A stretch of DNA of 63,832 nucleotides, counting the filler, from Octopus bimaculoides (taxonomy: Eukaryota): NCBI RefSeq assembly GCF_001194135.2. It is 6 parts of 4 records of this genome, joined end to end, with 100 filler letters (N's around TTAATTAATTAA, not from the genome) between each part and the next. Parts side by side here need not be neighbours in the genome. Positions count along the whole stretch, not along the records: positions 10,507 to 25,297 come from NC_068990.1; positions 25,398 to 39,890 come from NC_069008.1; 4 more parts are not named here. The stretch is one strand, 5' to 3'. Below are positions 24,521 to 39,225 of this stretch, piece by piece. The translations under genes and the position numbers were made by a program. The notes beneath the pieces were generated by a model. The model searched no databases and had not been told where the DNA came from. It saw nothing but the letters and a program-made list of their open reading frames with translations. The stretch's first letter is position 1; the number at the start of each line of letters is the position of its first letter.

Positions 24521-26324
24521 ATATGTGAATGTATAACTTAGTGCAACAAAGTGTTCCTTGATAATCCCTTCTGGTTAAGCAGCGAAATGCATTTGGAATA
24601 TTCACCTGAAGAGTTCCAAGTCACCAGAAACGTGATAAGTACAAAAGAATAGATAATATAAGATCGTATTTATCTTAATTTTTCGTATGTGTGTGTTTGT
24701 GTGCGTGTGTGTGTAGTATAAATATCTATAATTTTTTCACGTTTAGAACGCCAGATGGTTGCAAACGATTTGTTCATGGCATAGTGCCAAGAAGCTCACG
24801 ATATTTGAGTCACTTATAATTTACTGCCAACAGATAAATATAACACACACACTAACACACACACACACACACATATACATATACGCGCACACGCACACAC
24901 ACACACACACACATATACACACAAAGGAAGCCGTTTTATTCTAAACAGACAATGTTTCCAAACGGTTACTGTTATCAATAATGCGTTCAATTAAACTGTC
25001 TTAGAATACTTAAAATGAAATAAAAATTTAGCCGTTTATTATCAACAGTCGAGTTAGAATTTATATTCCAACCTAAATTTTATCAGCCTGTCATTGTTAA
25101 CAAAAGCACTTTGCCCCAGAGATCACAATGTATATATAAAATGTACTGTAATGTGATAGAAAATTCAACAAAAAAAGTACTCCATCTGGTGATAAATGCT
25201 ATATATTTAAATGGCACGATATATTTAAAGACTTAAAGACATGTATTTTGCCCTTTAAAGATTATATATATATATATATATATATATACATATATATNNN
25301 NNNNNNNNNNNNNNNNNNNNNNNNNNNNNNNNNNNNNNNNNTTAATTAATTAANNNNNNNNNNNNNNNNNNNNNNNNNNNNNNNNNNNNNNNNNNNNTGT
25401 GTGTATATATATATATATATATACATATATACGACAGTCTTTCAGTTTCCGTCTACCAAATCCACTCACAAGGCTTTGGTCGGCCCGAGGCTATAATAGA
25501 AGACACTTACCCAAGGTGCCACTCAGTGGGAATGAACCCGGAACCATGTGGTTGGTAAGCAAGCTACTTACCACATAGCCACTCCTGCACCTATAACGTT
25601 GATGTTTCAAATATATAAAAATCTATTTTCTAAATTTTATCGTCATAATAGTATTTCTTGCCCCGTGAAAATGTATCTCACGGGAAAATGTTTCTCTAGA
25701 AAGTTATAAAGAAACAGCTGGCGTTCTCTTGTTACACAACCATTAACAGAAACTATATTTACATTAGATACAGTAGAGAATAGTTTAGAGAATGATGTAA
25801 AATAAGCTTTTTAAATTATGTAGTTATAACAGTAATTTATTTAACTTGGTATTTCATTGTATAATAACTGTGTTGATCTCTCTTCTATATCTTATGCTGT
25901 TTCCTTTTTATTTCAGATTAAAGGATGACATTGGCATAAAAGAACTTTTTTTTACATTAGCTAAATCTTGAACGTTTATCATCTTTTAAAGACTAAAGGA
26001 GAACGTTATACAGAATAGAAATGATCATATTGCTATAAAGTATGAAATATTTGCTCTGAACTGAGACAAATAGCAACATTTTCCTATTCGTTATTTAGTG
26101 GTTTTGCATTCTAATTAACTTTGAAAGTGTTTGTAAAGGAGTTTGCAGCATCATTAGATGTTGATAAGGATCACAGTTGACGGCACTGGAGATAATTGTA
26201 ACAAATAAAATATAAAAGGAAAACGAAGGAAAATATTCGTATATTGAGTTCAAAAGAGAAAAAGAAGGGAAAAAATTTAATTCTGCAACAAATTAAAGGT
26301 TTGGAGTTTTGTATTCATTCGGAG

Positions 26325-27356
26325 ATGTCGAATGATATCCAAAAATCATCATATCACTGTGATATCTGTGGTAAATCATTCACTAAAAGTAGTGACTTCA
26401 CAACTCATAAACGTATTCATACAGGAGAGAAACCATATCATTGTGATATCTGTGGTAAATCATTCTCTCAAAATATTCACTTAACTACACACAAGCATAT
26501 TCATACAGGGAAGAAACCATATGACTGTGATATCTGCGATCAGTCATTCTCTCATAATAGTGCCTTAACTACACACAAACATATTCATACAGGAGAGAAA
26601 CCATATGACTGTGATATCTGCGGTAAATCATTCACTGAAAATAGTAGTTTAACAAAGCACAAACGTAGTCATACAGGGGAGAAACCATTTCACTGTGACA
26701 TTTGTGGTAAATTATTTTCTCAAAAAGGTAATCTAACAACTCATAAACACATTCATACAGGAGAAAAACAATTTCACTGTGATATCTGTGGTAAATTATG
26801 CTCTCAAAAAGGTAACCTAGCCACACATAAACGTAGTCATACAGGAGAGAAGCCATTTCAATGTAATATTTGTGGTAGATCATTCTCTCGAATTGATAAG
26901 TTAACTTCTCACAAACGTATTCATACAGGAGAGAAACCATATCACTGTGATATCTGTGGCAAATCATTCTCTGTAAATAGTATCTTAACTACACACAAAC
27001 GTATTCACACAGGAGAGAAGCCATATCATTGTGATATCTGTGGTAGATCCTTCTCTGGAAGTTGTGACTTGACTAACCACAAACGTATTCATACGGGACA
27101 GAAGCCATATCACTGTGATATCTGTGGCAAATCATTCTCTGTAAGTAGTGCCTTAACAACTCACAAACGTATTCACACAGGAGAGAAGCCATTTCACTGT
27201 GCTATCTGTGGTAAATCGTTTTCTCGAATACATAACTTGGCTTCTCACGAACGTATACATACGGGAGAGAAGCCATATTGCTGTGAAATCTGTGGCAAAG
27301 CATTTACTCAAAGAAGTCATTTAACTACACATGTATCAATCCATATGAAAGTGTGA
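26325..27356 (+). CDS. C2H2 zinc-finger protein ZNF-A (343 aa, 12 tandem fingers, no recognisable effector domain)
   Basis: Open frame with 12 CxxC-x12-HxxxH units and TGEKP linkers. The first real ATG is at 26325 (MSNDIQKSS); the ORF track starts earlier at a TTG. Ends HVSIHMKV*. Upstream acceptor tttcag at 25911-25916; AATAAA at 28005 and 28130. Confidence 0.93.
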
Positions 27357-36623: not shown

Positions 36624-39225
36624 TTCTCCAAGGAATAAAAACAAAACCAAATCCTTTAGCTGTTTCACCGTATTACATTACTCCCTTGAAATTATTCTCT
36701 GTCCATCACAATATTTCAATAGTTTTCTTGTTTCTGTTTTTATACAATTATTTTTATGGTTATCAACTGCGATCTTCATGAATATTTAAAAATGCTGCAA
36801 ACTCTTTTAGAAACATATTCAAGTTTAATTCGAATGCAAAAGCACCAGATAATGACATAGAGAAACGTTGCTATGAATCTCAAGTGACAGCAAATATTTC
36901 ATAGCAATTCAACCCTAGATTTATTACAGTAGGGTTATTATACAGTAGGGTTATTATATCTGTTCCCTAAAACATTTTCCTTTCGTGTTTAATAGACGAT
37001 ACGTCGGTAGTATGTAAAAAGCAGTCGGTACACTCTGTTAGGGTTAGGGTTAAGAAGGGCATCCAGCCATAGAAGCCATGCCTTAAAAGACAGCAGGAGT
37101 CTGGTGCAGCTACTTGCAAGCCAGCTCTGAGTCAAACAGTCCAACCCATGCTAGCATGGAAATGCGGACGTTAAACGATCATAATGATAAAGTATCCGGT
37201 ATACAAAAGTTGTTTTCTGCCAATGTCATCCGTCAATCTGAAGTAATAAAGAAACAGTATTAGATACCAGAGGAGAGATCAAAATGGAAATGTTCCAACA
37301 TTTCTTTATTAGCAAATTACATCAAAGAACATTGTGTGAAATCTAAAGATGTGTAAAGCACGGCCACATCATCAAATTGCGGGCGAGTTTGTGTCTCACT
37401 ACTCAACACGTAGACATGAAAGTCAGTGTGTGTGTGTTTCACTTCTCTGTTCGCTCACGAATTTGAACAGTAAATGTTGGCTTCAACAGGACATAAAAAT
37501 CTTTACGGAAATTACTGAACAAATAGATAAAACATCTGATGATCCGATTTGATTTTGACAGATATGCGACTTATATATATATAAAGAATACCCTTTAGCA
37601 AACCCACTTCGCTCCACACCCACCGCCAATATACTTTTCATTGTTAAAATAGAAGAAATTTCAGCCCCTCCTCCCACCACACTTTATCCCAATAAAGAAA
37701 TTCGGTCTTTTAATTAAGAGCGAAACAAGAATCTATTAACATTGACAAATGCAACCTACCCTCGATCTTGTGACTGACCCGAGGGTTATTTGCTGTTATT
37801 TCTAGCATGTAGAGTGACCACTTCGCTGCCTGTTAAATGTTTGTCATACGAAGGGCGCACCTTTCCCCCATCGTCACTATCATTAGATGGATTCGTGATG
37901 TTTTAAAAAGTCTTCCAAGTAGTCGGAAATAAGAGCCACATCTCTGATTTTATTTGCTAGTTCTTTCTTTCTTTCTTTCTTTGAATTACACGTTGACATA
38001 TAAGGAAATGACAGTTGTGAAAATAGATTAGGGAGTGTCTAAAAATGCGACATTTTTCGTTATAGAATACATTATTTTAGCAAAATTAGAGACAGATTAA
38101 TGAGAACAGTGCAGGTGTAATCTGAAATCGGATTCAGACTGCCCTCGGTGGGTAATTTGAAATCTTCACACGGATTTTTACTAAAGAAAGACAAAGAAAA
38201 GAAAAAAAAGAAGAAAAGACGCAAAAGGAGAGTATCCTGACATCTAGCTCCGATTTGATTGCCCCCACAAATAATAACTTAAACTATAAACACGAATAAT
38301 TATTATTAAGATCATTAGAATAAGCTTGTTGATTTATTATTGTTTAAAATGTGTTTATTCAGTTAATTCAGAGCATAATGTGGAGAAGACGATTAATATC
38401 CATGTCTGACAAAATGAAAGCGTTTTCAATTATCAAATCTGTACTTTACTTTATATATCACATGTAACGCTGATATTTTCAAAAATAACAGATCAACATT
38501 TCAGTTTGGAAGTATTTTCCTGTAGGCAAACGTCAGCAAAAAGACGACTTTTGCAGGATCAAATATCTTTGTTGTAATATTATATATTTACACTAGTTTA
38601 GAATTACTGAACATAATGACAATTCTATTATCTATACATATTATTACAGATCTATTATTATTATTATTCAAGTAAATCTTTGTCAACTTACCGCTGTTTC
38701 TCAACAGTGAATCAGTGCGTCGATCAAAATGCAAAACAAATTCTTTCGTTCTTAGATTTTCAGGAGATTCTTCTCCATTTTTAAAGATTCTGCGACGTAA
38801 ACCTTCGTTTAGCTTCTTCGTTCTTTATACATCAATTTCTGTTTGTTTTAAAAGCATCGCTTTAAATATACTCTCTGTCGGGTCTTGATATATATATATA
38901 TATGTATATATAATTAAAGCAGTTTTTTTTCGTGTAATGATTTTATAGCAACTGTTTATTTTCACTTCAAGTAACCAATTATATAAATATCAATTACGCA
39001 GTTGGCTGCCTCGCCCTTTCCGATTTCTGATGACGAAGAGGAGATAACCACTTGGCAGCACTTAAGAGATTCCTTGTATGTCTACACTTATGGAGATTCG
39101 TACAGAACCTATTTGCACCAATTTCTCTGCAACAGTGGTTCTCAACACCCACCCCCTTTTTTGTCTATCGACCCGTATGATTGCTATTTTATTCTGGTGG
39201 TCCCCCATAGTCATTCGATGTTTAA

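Follow-up and report, generated by a model that had tools for sequence, protein, structure and literature searches.

Convergent zinc-finger genes in inverted orientation within a C2H2 cluster of Octopus bimaculoides

The locus described here is probably part of a reticulately evolving cluster of C2H2 zinc-finger (ZNF) genes, in which a module of about 3.5 kb has been duplicated at the DNA level in both orientations. It lies in a window of 63,832 nt (the whole stretch of DNA analysed, along which all positions are counted), where ZNF-A (+) and ZNF-C (-) converge, tail to tail, with ZNF-B in between. As its arms have not been kept identical, the locus fails to behave like a palindrome.

Results

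Geometry of the locus

Positions 25398-39890 correspond to a 14.5-kb contig of O. bimaculoides chromosome CM046628.1 (GCA_001194135.2) at ~16.04 Mb. The contig contains no N, placing ZNF-A, ZNF-B and ZNF-C in a single contig, and is bounded by gaps of 1232 N on the left and 1481 N on the right. The interval from 25.8 to 37.3 kb of the window is 16.036-16.048 Mb of the record. In the 30 kb around this piece five ZNF ORFs were found, in the order E, A, B, C, D. Splice sites and UTR status are predicted from genomic sequence alone, and comparisons of A and C with relatives cover this 30-kb neighbourhood.

Self-BLAST of the piece returned six collinear inverted A/C blocks, which lie around the finger arrays or beyond them (identity and E value in brackets):

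25873-29448, +, arm A, comprising the complete ZNF-A module, intron end to distal flank (collinear inverted BLAST chain against 37282-32276)
32276-37282, -, arm C, the whole ZNF-C module (self-BLAST and alignment)
29449-32275, -, 2.8-kb spacer between the arms, with the ZNF-B unit
25873-25955 with 37282-37199, inverted block, intron end and acceptor (83%, E=4e-17)
26041-26320 with 36903-36633, inverted block, leader (71%, E=3e-38)
27636-28205 with 34815-34239, inverted block, 3'UTR core (76%, E=8e-109)
28404-28789 with 33776-33372, inverted block, SINE (73.5%, E=9e-75)
28805-28935 with 32895-32763, inverted block, distal patch (93%, E=2e-42)
29347-29448 with 32364-32276, inverted block, innermost (74%, E=3e-13)

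Private transposable element (TE) insertions account for the greater length of arm C. An initial annotation of this DNA had described an inverted, convergent ZNF-A/ZNF-C locus around ZNF-B, and both self-BLAST and the ORFs place the elements it listed at essentially the same coordinates. Its extent of ~11.5 kb, inner limits of 29380/32320 and ~3-kb spacer agree with the arms and spacer given above, and the whole duplicated locus does lie in one piece, free of gaps. The term palindromic, however, does not hold in its usual sense: the arms are just 71-84% identical over most of their length, with a Jukes-Cantor (JC) distance of ~0.3 (range among these blocks 0.18-0.34). When all blocks are included, A-C divergence along the arms runs from JC 0.03 to 0.34.

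The ZNF-A, ZNF-C and ZNF-B units

The features of the three units are as follows:

25873-25916, +, A intron end, polypyrimidine tract and predicted AG acceptor (four-gene alignment)
25917-26324, +, A non-coding leader exon, 408 nt, predicted
26325-27356, +, ZNF-A CDS, 343 aa, 12 C2H2 fingers (ORF call and Pfam)
27636-28205, +, A 3'UTR core, common to A, C, D and E (BLAST and alignment)
27841-27999 and 28059-28111, +, conserved 3'UTR blocks, A copy (alignment)
37238-37282, -, C intron end, polypyrimidine tract and predicted acceptor (BLAST and four-gene alignment)
36624-37237, -, C leader exon, 614 nt, predicted, holding a private TE of ~210 nt at 36990-37199
35085-36623, -, ZNF-C CDS, 512 aa, 17 fingers and a degenerate first finger (ORF call and Pfam)
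34880-35084, -, decayed zinc fingers past the C stop codon (finger remnants in the frame-2 translation)
34239-34877, -, C 3'UTR core, AATAAA at 34447 and 34310
29938-31323, -, ZNF-B CDS, 461 aa, 11 recognisable fingers and degenerate ones, non-finger N-terminus

ZNF-A and ZNF-C share the predicted acceptor TTCAG/ATT, the protein start MS(N/K)DIQKSS and both AATAAA signals, which in ZNF-A are at 28005 and 28130. The A leader has stops in every frame and a conserved uATG 8 nt into the exon. At the other end of the unit, the finger remnants beyond the C stop indicate that the ZNF-C ORF has been secondarily truncated. Homology between A and C reaches ~45-85 nt into the intron that precedes the acceptor and extends ~1.2 kb past the poly(A) signals, and is therefore not due to retroposition; a retroposed gene copy was rejected, as homology is not confined to the mRNA. 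The proposal that a whole transcription unit was duplicated at the DNA level is thus borne out by the homologous intron and post-poly(A) sequence.

Within the 3'UTR, the two conserved blocks show an A-C identity of 89-91%, against ~75% in the flanking UTR, and are 97-100% identical among C, D and E. Folding of the conserved block gave a consensus energy of -3.5 kcal/mol and no covariation. A structured RNA was rejected as an explanation, given the lack of covariation and a small GTGATAACA hairpin that is broken in A.

ZNF-B differs from the other genes. Nucleotide identity of its fingers to those of A is 60%, compared with ~76% among A, C, D and E, and self-BLAST found no match to the shared leader or 3'UTR in its unit. 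ZNF-B belongs to another subfamily and is interspersed in the cluster.

All three predicted proteins are built of tandem 28-aa C2H2 fingers with Krüppel-type TGEKP-like linkers, visible as an 84-nt periodicity in the DNA, and Pfam zf-C2H2 and zf-H2C2_2 stretches number 12 in A, 10 in B and 17 in C. KRAB, SCAN and BTB domains were absent from the predicted A, B and C proteins at E<=0.01, the Pfam families recovered being of C2H2 type only; a further coding exon might lie upstream. An entropy profile of 42 fingers reaches 2.0-3.1 bits at positions 12-15, 17 and 18 and is 0 at the Cys and His residues. With intact ORFs, an invariant Cys/His scaffold and highly variable DNA-contact positions, the proteins look functional. 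A search with full-length ZNF-A was dominated by vertebrate ZNFs, the best match having at most 59% identity. The exact A, B and C proteins were absent from the protein collection, and no entry has a word in common with the distinctive N-termini of B and C. Metagenomes scanned with a conserved 3'UTR 30-mer gave 0 matches, and 9 matches to a degenerate acceptor motif involve the motif alone and are put down to chance.

The same module in neighbouring genes

Two further ZNF genes, E (-) and D (+), lie 4-6 kb outside the piece, across the N gaps; their orientation relative to it rests on Illumina and Hi-C scaffolding, whereas their sequence similarity does not. A four-gene alignment revealed that both have the same acceptor, leader and start, and all four genes (A, C, D and E) carry the same 3'UTR with both AATAAA signals. 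Homology of the C intron end to D and E runs on to ~37345. The initial annotation treated A and C as a gene pair; that the pair is exclusive is not supported, given the presence of acceptor, leader, start and 3'UTR at D and E. It had set its reading against one in which shared flanks recur at many unrelated, randomly oriented ZNF genes. Recurrence is found in part, for the module at E (-) and D (+), but not for the distal flank, which within the 30 kb is confined to A and C.

Relationships among the four genes differ from segment to segment. By BLAST, the C 3'UTR is 92.9% identical to D (over 34274-34877) and 89.1% to E (over 34246-34831), and D and E share 89.6%, while A is 75.7% identical to C, 76.9% to D and 75.5% to E. 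Counting substitutions only, identities are 92.7, 91.6 and 91.5% within C/D/E, against 79-83% for pairs involving A. The acceptor region is 90.2% identical between C and E and 83.9% between C and D, with A at 74-79% to the others (A-C 77%). In the last 280 nt of the leader, by contrast, A and C are more alike (76.6%) than are A and E (67.7%) or C and E (66.5%). Leaders and CDS of D and E are 65-80% identical to C, and in the C-terminal tail A, D and E go together.

Informative sites of the quartet in the 3'UTR number 5 for AC|DE, 6 for AD|CE and 3 for AE|CD; in the 5' region the counts are 3, 9 and 4, respectively. These sites do not support A and C as sisters within the four genes. Private changes in the 3'UTR amount to 76 in A, against 9 in C, 7 in D and 16 in E, and in the 5' region to 39, 25, 18 and 25, respectively. 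Finger-register orthology among the four genes gave no diagonal signal, inter-gene means (73-77%) being about the same as within-gene means; with no such signal, identification of sisters by positional finger orthology was dropped. Tandem duplication of a head-to-head pair (E/A giving C/D) was also rejected, because it predicts E close to C and A close to D throughout, with which the 3'UTR and CDS disagree.

These comparisons bear on the stricter possibility that A and C are sisters, placed on either side of ZNF-B by one inverted duplication, with the likeness of D and E to C being due to later copying or conversion from C. The chain of six inverted blocks, ~1 kb of it in flank unique to A and C in the 30 kb, speaks for it, as does the closeness of the A and C leaders. 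However, recent copies of C would be ~90% identical throughout, and only the 3'UTR tract of ~600 nt is, together with the acceptor region for E; the quartet sites do not favour AC|DE, and the JC range along the arms does not fit a single neutral event. We regard this history as unlikely, though it fares better than the other alternatives considered below.

The distal flank common to A and C

Beyond the poly(A) signals, ~1-1.2 kb of A/C-specific flank (within the 30 kb available) comprises a SINE, a patch of high identity and an innermost block, in that order:

28404-28716, +, CORE-like SINE body and (TA)n(CA)n tail, A copy (alignment)
33466-33776, -, CORE-like SINE, C copy (alignment)
28717-28935, +, high-identity distal patch, A copy (191/200 aligned nt, 95.5%, match arm C)
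33372-33444, -, patch part a, C copy (97.3% identity to 28717-28790)
32763-32895, -, patch part b, C copy (94.7% identity to 28805-28935)
29347-29448, +, innermost shared block, A copy (86% over ungapped columns)
32276-32364, -, innermost shared block, C copy (pairs with 29347-29448)

The two SINEs are 82% identical over ungapped columns and are the only full copies in the 30 kb. On inspection the element, which had been labelled CORE-SINE (28404-28672 / 33776-33466), shows a B-box-like GAGTTCGATTCCC and what may be a MIR/CORE-like segment. ARAGORN found no tRNA in the piece, and Rfam only sub-threshold matches of miRNA families to microsatellites. The flank is heterogeneous, at JC 0.03-0.20 compared with ~0.3 for the gene body; therefore, one neutral duplication event does not account for everything.

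Could the same TE(s) have inserted independently downstream of A and C, with no special relationship between the two? In favour, the first block is plainly a SINE ending in a microsatellite, TEs abound in the octopus genome (another SINE is present seven times in the 30 kb), and the patch looks far younger than the genes. However, the SINE, both parts of the patch and the innermost block follow one another in the same order, and with matching relative orientation, in either arm, the microsatellite/patch junctions are identical, and the blocks are parted only by arm-private insertions. With no further copy of any flank block in the 30 kb, independent insertion is improbable.

Private insertions and repeats

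As initially proposed, each arm has its own insertions, private TEs being confirmed in both:

27407-27645, unstranded, tRNA-derived SINE private to the A 3'UTR (missing at the same position in C, D and E)
32400-32762, unstranded, tRNA-derived SINE private to arm C (weak tRNA-head similarity to other SINEs)
32897-33371, +, ~480-nt composite TE made up of a 5' module, a TA microsatellite and a SINE, splitting the patch in arm C only
25398-25592, +, partial composite TE/SINE copy at the left contig end, adjoining the 1232-N gap
39816-39890, -, same SINE again, incomplete, at the right end of the contig, adjoining the 1481-N gap

The SINE in the A 3'UTR has an 88.9% identical copy downstream of D. 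Three copies of the composite TE have identical termini (32897-33371, L002 3626-4139 and L001 4648-4995). A non-coding tandem repeat of 70-90 bp is reportedly enriched beside C2H2 clusters, according to the 2015 octopus genome paper. None was found in the piece, where TRF detects 84-nt finger arrays and microsatellites only. The repeat is reported as an enrichment, and not as a requirement, of octopod C2H2 clusters.

An assembly artefact, for instance a flip introduced at one of the self-complementary (TA)n tracts (28677-28702, 28930-28978 and 33105-33213), is very hard to credit: the assembly is indeed Illumina shotgun re-scaffolded with Hi-C (PMC9068888), and this single chromosome record is the only assembly or transcript found with A, B or C, but the three genes share one N-free contig, the arms, at only ~75% identity, would not mislead an assembler, and block order and orientation are kept on both sides of each tract, which a flip would break.

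Discussion

The reading we prefer, a reticulately evolving cluster, has as its unit a module of ~3.5 kb consisting of the intron end and acceptor, a non-coding leader of ~400 nt, a single-exon poly-finger ORF and a 3'UTR of ~0.85 kb with two poly(A) signals. This module has been copied several times in both orientations, and the 30 kb has at least four examples of it (E-, A+, C-, D+); among them A and C are old, separated by ~0.3 substitutions per site. Their tail-to-tail layout and ~1 kb of common downstream flank make it likely that A and the C lineage took part in an ancient inverted duplication, or in a duplication with a later inversion. The subsequent history appears to have been reticulate: a 3'UTR tract of ~600 nt is nearly homogeneous in C, D and E but not in A, and segment groupings differ, with the acceptor giving C+E, the leader A+C and the C-terminal tail A+D+E. 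Non-allelic gene conversion or unequal exchange, combined with purifying selection on short UTR blocks, would be the most economical account of these patterns. Each arm took up its own SINE/TE insertions afterwards.

More speculatively, the short islands of high identity (the 3'UTR blocks and the 200-nt patch), set in paralogs that are otherwise ~30% different, might be functional cis-elements or ongoing gene-conversion hotspots that tie the subfamily together, although we think this rather unlikely. If true, regulatory sequence would evolve in concert while the DNA-binding fingers diversify, and the islands could serve common post-transcriptional control (miRNA/RBP sites) or act as a 3' regulatory element.

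In octopods, C2H2 genes are arranged in clusters that arose by tandem duplication (PMC9795677, PMC9068888). The clusters of O. bimaculoides, O. sinensis and A. fangsiao resemble this locus in their local duplication and multi-finger genes (PMC9795677, PMC9068888, PMC12513265), and also in Krüppel-type TGEKP linkers; no effector domain was found at the locus. The accounts in these three papers do not include gene orientation, a leader/3'UTR module or conversion-like mosaicism. The locus adds such detail to octopod C2H2 clusters, but no new principle.

In mice, clusters of KRAB-ZNF genes have undergone duplications, deletions and inversions, and closely related genes are found apart from each other and on different strands (PMC5363842). 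In vertebrates at large, KRAB-ZNF clusters (human chr19, mouse chr2/4/5 and others) are likewise shaped by segmental duplication, deletion and inversion, with dispersed relatives and diversified DNA-contact residues (PMC5363842). Unlike them, the octopus locus shows no KRAB or SCAN domain in Pfam, has its whole ORF in one predicted terminal exon behind a non-coding leader, and belongs to an independent invertebrate expansion.

The geometry is that of ampliconic palindromes, such as those of primate sex chromosomes, with few-kb inverted arms, a short unique spacer and genes in the arms. Arms of ampliconic palindromes are >99% identical and are maintained through arm-to-arm gene conversion. By contrast, the octopus arms share 71-84%, except for the 200-nt patch (95.5%) and the UTR blocks (~90%), and the 3'UTR and acceptor region of C are closer to genes outside the locus than to arm A. 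The locus is thus an unexceptional stretch of a gene cluster that grows by duplication, and is not remarkable as a stand-alone palindrome.

Its value is as a worked example of octopus C2H2 growth, in which the duplication unit is a complete terminal-exon module, copies occur in both orientations and parts of the module have differing histories; beyond annotation it has little importance. Should the mosaic and the conserved UTR blocks prove general across the genome, they could be used to date waves of expansion and to ask about common post-transcriptional regulation.

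Inverted arms of ZNF-A and ZNF-C

Self-BLAST resolves the homology between the arms carrying ZNF-A (+) and ZNF-C (-), two convergent C2H2 zinc-finger (ZNF) genes, into six collinear, inverted blocks. The A arm covers 25873-29448 and the C arm 37282-32276, with a spacer of 2.83 kb that contains a third gene, ZNF-B (-).

Blocks shared by the A and C arms (all inverted)
A 25873-25955, C 37282-37199: intron end and acceptor, 83%, E=4e-17
A 26041-26320, C 36903-36633: leader, 71%, E=3e-38
A 27636-28205, C 34815-34239: 3'UTR core, 76%, E=8e-109
A 28404-28789, C 33776-33372: SINE, 73.5%, E=9e-75
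A 28805-28935, C 32895-32763: distal high-identity patch, 93%, E=2e-42
A 29347-29448, C 32364-32276: innermost block (seg3), 74%, E=3e-13

At the acceptor predicted from sequence alone, both genes have a polypyrimidine tract and TTCAG/ATT. The predicted leader exon measures 408 nt in A; that of C, at 614 nt, contains a transposable element (TE) of ~210 nt. Two AATAAA signals are shared by the 3'UTRs, and the proteins begin with MS(N/K)DIQKSS. The initial annotation had described A and C as inverted copies of a whole unit, and self-BLAST and sequence recover all that it listed: acceptor, leader, starts, 3'UTR, both poly(A) signals, flank and spacer. It had also proposed duplication of the transcription unit at the DNA level with separate SINE/MITE insertions in each arm. 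The homology does run into the intron and past the poly(A) sites, which excludes retroposition, and private TE insertions were seen in both arms.

Assembly of the locus

Exact matches to its three ORF products put the piece (25398-39890) on Octopus bimaculoides chromosome CM046628.1 (GCA_001194135.2; record coordinate = window + 16,010,488). The chromosomes come from the first assembly, made by Illumina shotgun sequencing, after re-scaffolding with Hi-C (PMC9068888). It contains zero N and is bounded by scaffold gaps of 1232 N and 1481 N. Self-complementary (TA)n tracts are present, at which the assembly might in principle have flipped, but paralogous blocks on either side of these tracts keep the order and orientation of the other arm, and the arrangement of A, B and C is therefore regarded as real. 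Comparisons were made within 30.3 kb of context, merged from two loci (L001 and L002, each with its own coordinates), which add ZNF genes D and E just outside the piece; for these two genes, orientation hinges on how the scaffold was joined over the gaps. Both contig ends (25398-25592 and 39816-39890) stop inside copies, in opposite orientations, of one SINE/composite TE with seven copies in the 30 kb, so the gaps are probably repeat-induced.

Genes and finger arrays

The three ZNF genes of the piece, with B in the spacer, were found as annotated.

Open reading frames of the five genes
26325-27356 (+): ZNF-A, 343 aa, 12 fingers
29938-31323 (-): ZNF-B, 461 aa
35085-36623 (-): ZNF-C, 512 aa, 17 fingers
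L001 5182-5706, record 16031994-16032518 (-): gene E, six fingers, starts MSKKLREASF
L002 2241-3104, record 16054008-16054871 (+ in the chromosome): gene D, at least 10 fingers

The finger proteins are intact and diversified, and show no KRAB, SCAN or BTB domain in Pfam at E<=0.01. A full-length protein search matched only vertebrate and insect ZNFs, at no more than 59% identity. No octopus relatives were retrieved from protein or DNA collections, and the three proteins and any close octopus relatives seem to be missing from the large protein collection. Finger-by-finger comparison revealed no register between gene pairs (inter-gene means 73-77%, within-gene 75-79%). Because finger arrays cross-match in any register, the decisive test of homology is non-finger sequence. 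The fingers of B are only 60% identical to those of A, which places B in another subfamily. The C-terminal tail TTH(V/I)SIH.KV* is common to A, D and E; C terminates early and is followed by two to three decayed fingers (34880-35084, -), so its ORF was shortened secondarily, which accounts for the missing tail. Fingers 8 (26913-26996) and 10 (27081-27164) of ZNF-A share 94% nucleotide identity against a within-gene mean of ~79%, which points to a recent duplication of two fingers, or a conversion, within the gene.

Genes E/A and C/D each form a head-to-head pair, with acceptors 3.3 kb and 6 kb apart, an arrangement that makes shared bidirectional promoters possible. An element of ~600 nt (38267-38837, L001 78-658 and L001 7611-7841; 65-77% identical, all +), perhaps a TE or a promoter/5'-exon module, has one copy in the intergenic region of either head-to-head pair and a third at the left extreme of the context. 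The 5' flank and first ~25 codons of ZNF-B (31249-32024) have a diverged, inverted copy just upstream of D (L002 4513-5235, 68-69%). This copy adjoins an assembly gap, is followed by no finger array, and is perhaps a B-like relic that was truncated, or else a shared 5' module.

A module shared by four genes

The gene features that A and C have in common are not confined to this pair. D and E have this intron end, acceptor and leader-exon start as well (D lacks most of the leader), and their 3'UTR core, with its two AATAAA signals, is likewise the same. Membership of a module family is established for these four neighbouring genes, not genome-wide.

Pairwise identity among A, C, D and E
3'UTR core, BLAST: C-D 92.9%, C-E 89.1%, D-E 89.6%, A against others 75.5-76.9%
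3'UTR core, substitutions only: C-D 92.7%, C-E 91.6%, D-E 91.5%, A against others 79-83%
Acceptor region: C-D 83.9%, C-E 90.2%, D-E 83.6%, A against others 74-79%

The grouping of the genes varies by part of the module, with leader, N-terminal peptide and C-terminal tail disagreeing with 3'UTR and acceptor. Over the last 280 nt of the leader A-C identity is 76.6%, and A-E and C-E 66-68%; the N-terminal peptide is identical in C and D, differs by one residue in A and is divergent in E. Quartet informative sites do not support a sister grouping of A and C, either in the 3'UTR (AC/DE 5, AD/CE 6, AE/CD 3) or in the 5' region (3, 9 and 4, respectively). In the 3'UTR, A carries 76 private changes, C 9, D 7 and E 16; the four branches are comparable in the 5' region (39, 25, 18, 25). 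Therefore, the C/D/E 3'UTR has either been recently homogenised or is far more constrained than that of A.

Two blocks of the 3'UTR are conserved (27841-27999 and 28059-28111 in A; 34610-34453 and 34393-34333, -, in C), with identities of 89-91% for A against C and 97-100% within the C, D and E group, compared with ~75% in the surrounding UTR. RNA structure and covariation were sought in these blocks and none was found, with zero matches in Rfam; RNA secondary structure does not account for the conservation, which is one of primary sequence. An upstream ATG (GATGACATTG) 8 nt into the leader exon is also conserved in all four genes (A 25924-25926; C 37230-37228, -; also D and E), opening a uORF of 4 codons in A and D and a longer one in C and E.

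Divergence and the distal flank

Jukes-Cantor distance between A and C
Leader, CDS start and unconstrained UTR: 0.28-0.34
Shared SINE: 0.20
Acceptor: 0.18
seg3: 0.15
Two 3'UTR blocks: 0.10-0.12
Distal patch: 0.03-0.06

A spread so uneven along the arms could not come from a single neutral duplication. Within the 30 kb, the distal flank, beyond a non-alignable stretch, is common to A and C only; none of its blocks was found elsewhere, even in the sequence downstream of D and E, of which 1.5-1.9 kb could be compared. It comprises a CORE-like, putatively tRNA-derived SINE that has a (TA)n(CA)n tail (82% over ungapped columns), the patch, and seg3 (86% over ungapped columns). Between patch and seg3 each arm has private sequence: in A ~410 nt, in C a SINE of another kind. 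Four blocks (SINE, the two parts of the patch, seg3) agree in order and orientation and have identical junctions; this favours descent of both flanks from one source over independent TE insertion.

The patch (A 28717-28935; C 33444-33372 and 32895-32763) is intergenic, downstream of both genes, and 191/200 positions are identical. This 95.5%, against ~75% in the gene bodies, is found despite the splitting of the C-arm patch by a composite TE of ~480 nt with clean termini, two more copies of which lie near D and E. As the TE copies seem no less diverged than the patch, the identity of the patch would be better explained by constraint or short-tract conversion than by recency alone.

Origin of the cluster and comparison with known systems

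The cluster holds four copies of the module, inverted and collinear A and C arms that include the flank, mosaic similarities and private TEs. The most likely explanation for the whole is that a complete terminal-exon module (intron end and acceptor, leader, single-exon finger ORF, 3'UTR) would have been copied repeatedly at the DNA level, in both orientations, followed by reticulate evolution. We infer that A and the C lineage were linked by an ancient inverted duplication, or by tandem duplication and a later inversion, and that non-allelic gene conversion and/or purifying selection shaped the high-identity islands and the 3'UTR tract of C, D and E. What survives of the initial interpretation is that the arms are copies of a whole unit, inverted, made at the DNA level and bearing private TEs; a functional palindrome does not survive, and the data do not single out A and C as an exclusive pair. 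The A/C locus is nothing unusual for a ZNF cluster, and lacks the near-identical arms that define sex-chromosome palindromes. Nor are A, B and C of the KRAB type. Octopod C2H2 genes lie in tandem-duplicated chromosomal clusters, with an expansion put at ~41 Ma by Jukes-Cantor distances (PMC9795677; for the clusters see also PMC9068888 and PMC12513265). Mouse KZFP clusters have undergone duplications, deletions and inversions, and closely related genes in them are separated from one another and lie on opposite strands (PMC5363842). The octopus locus adds a further case of that kind.
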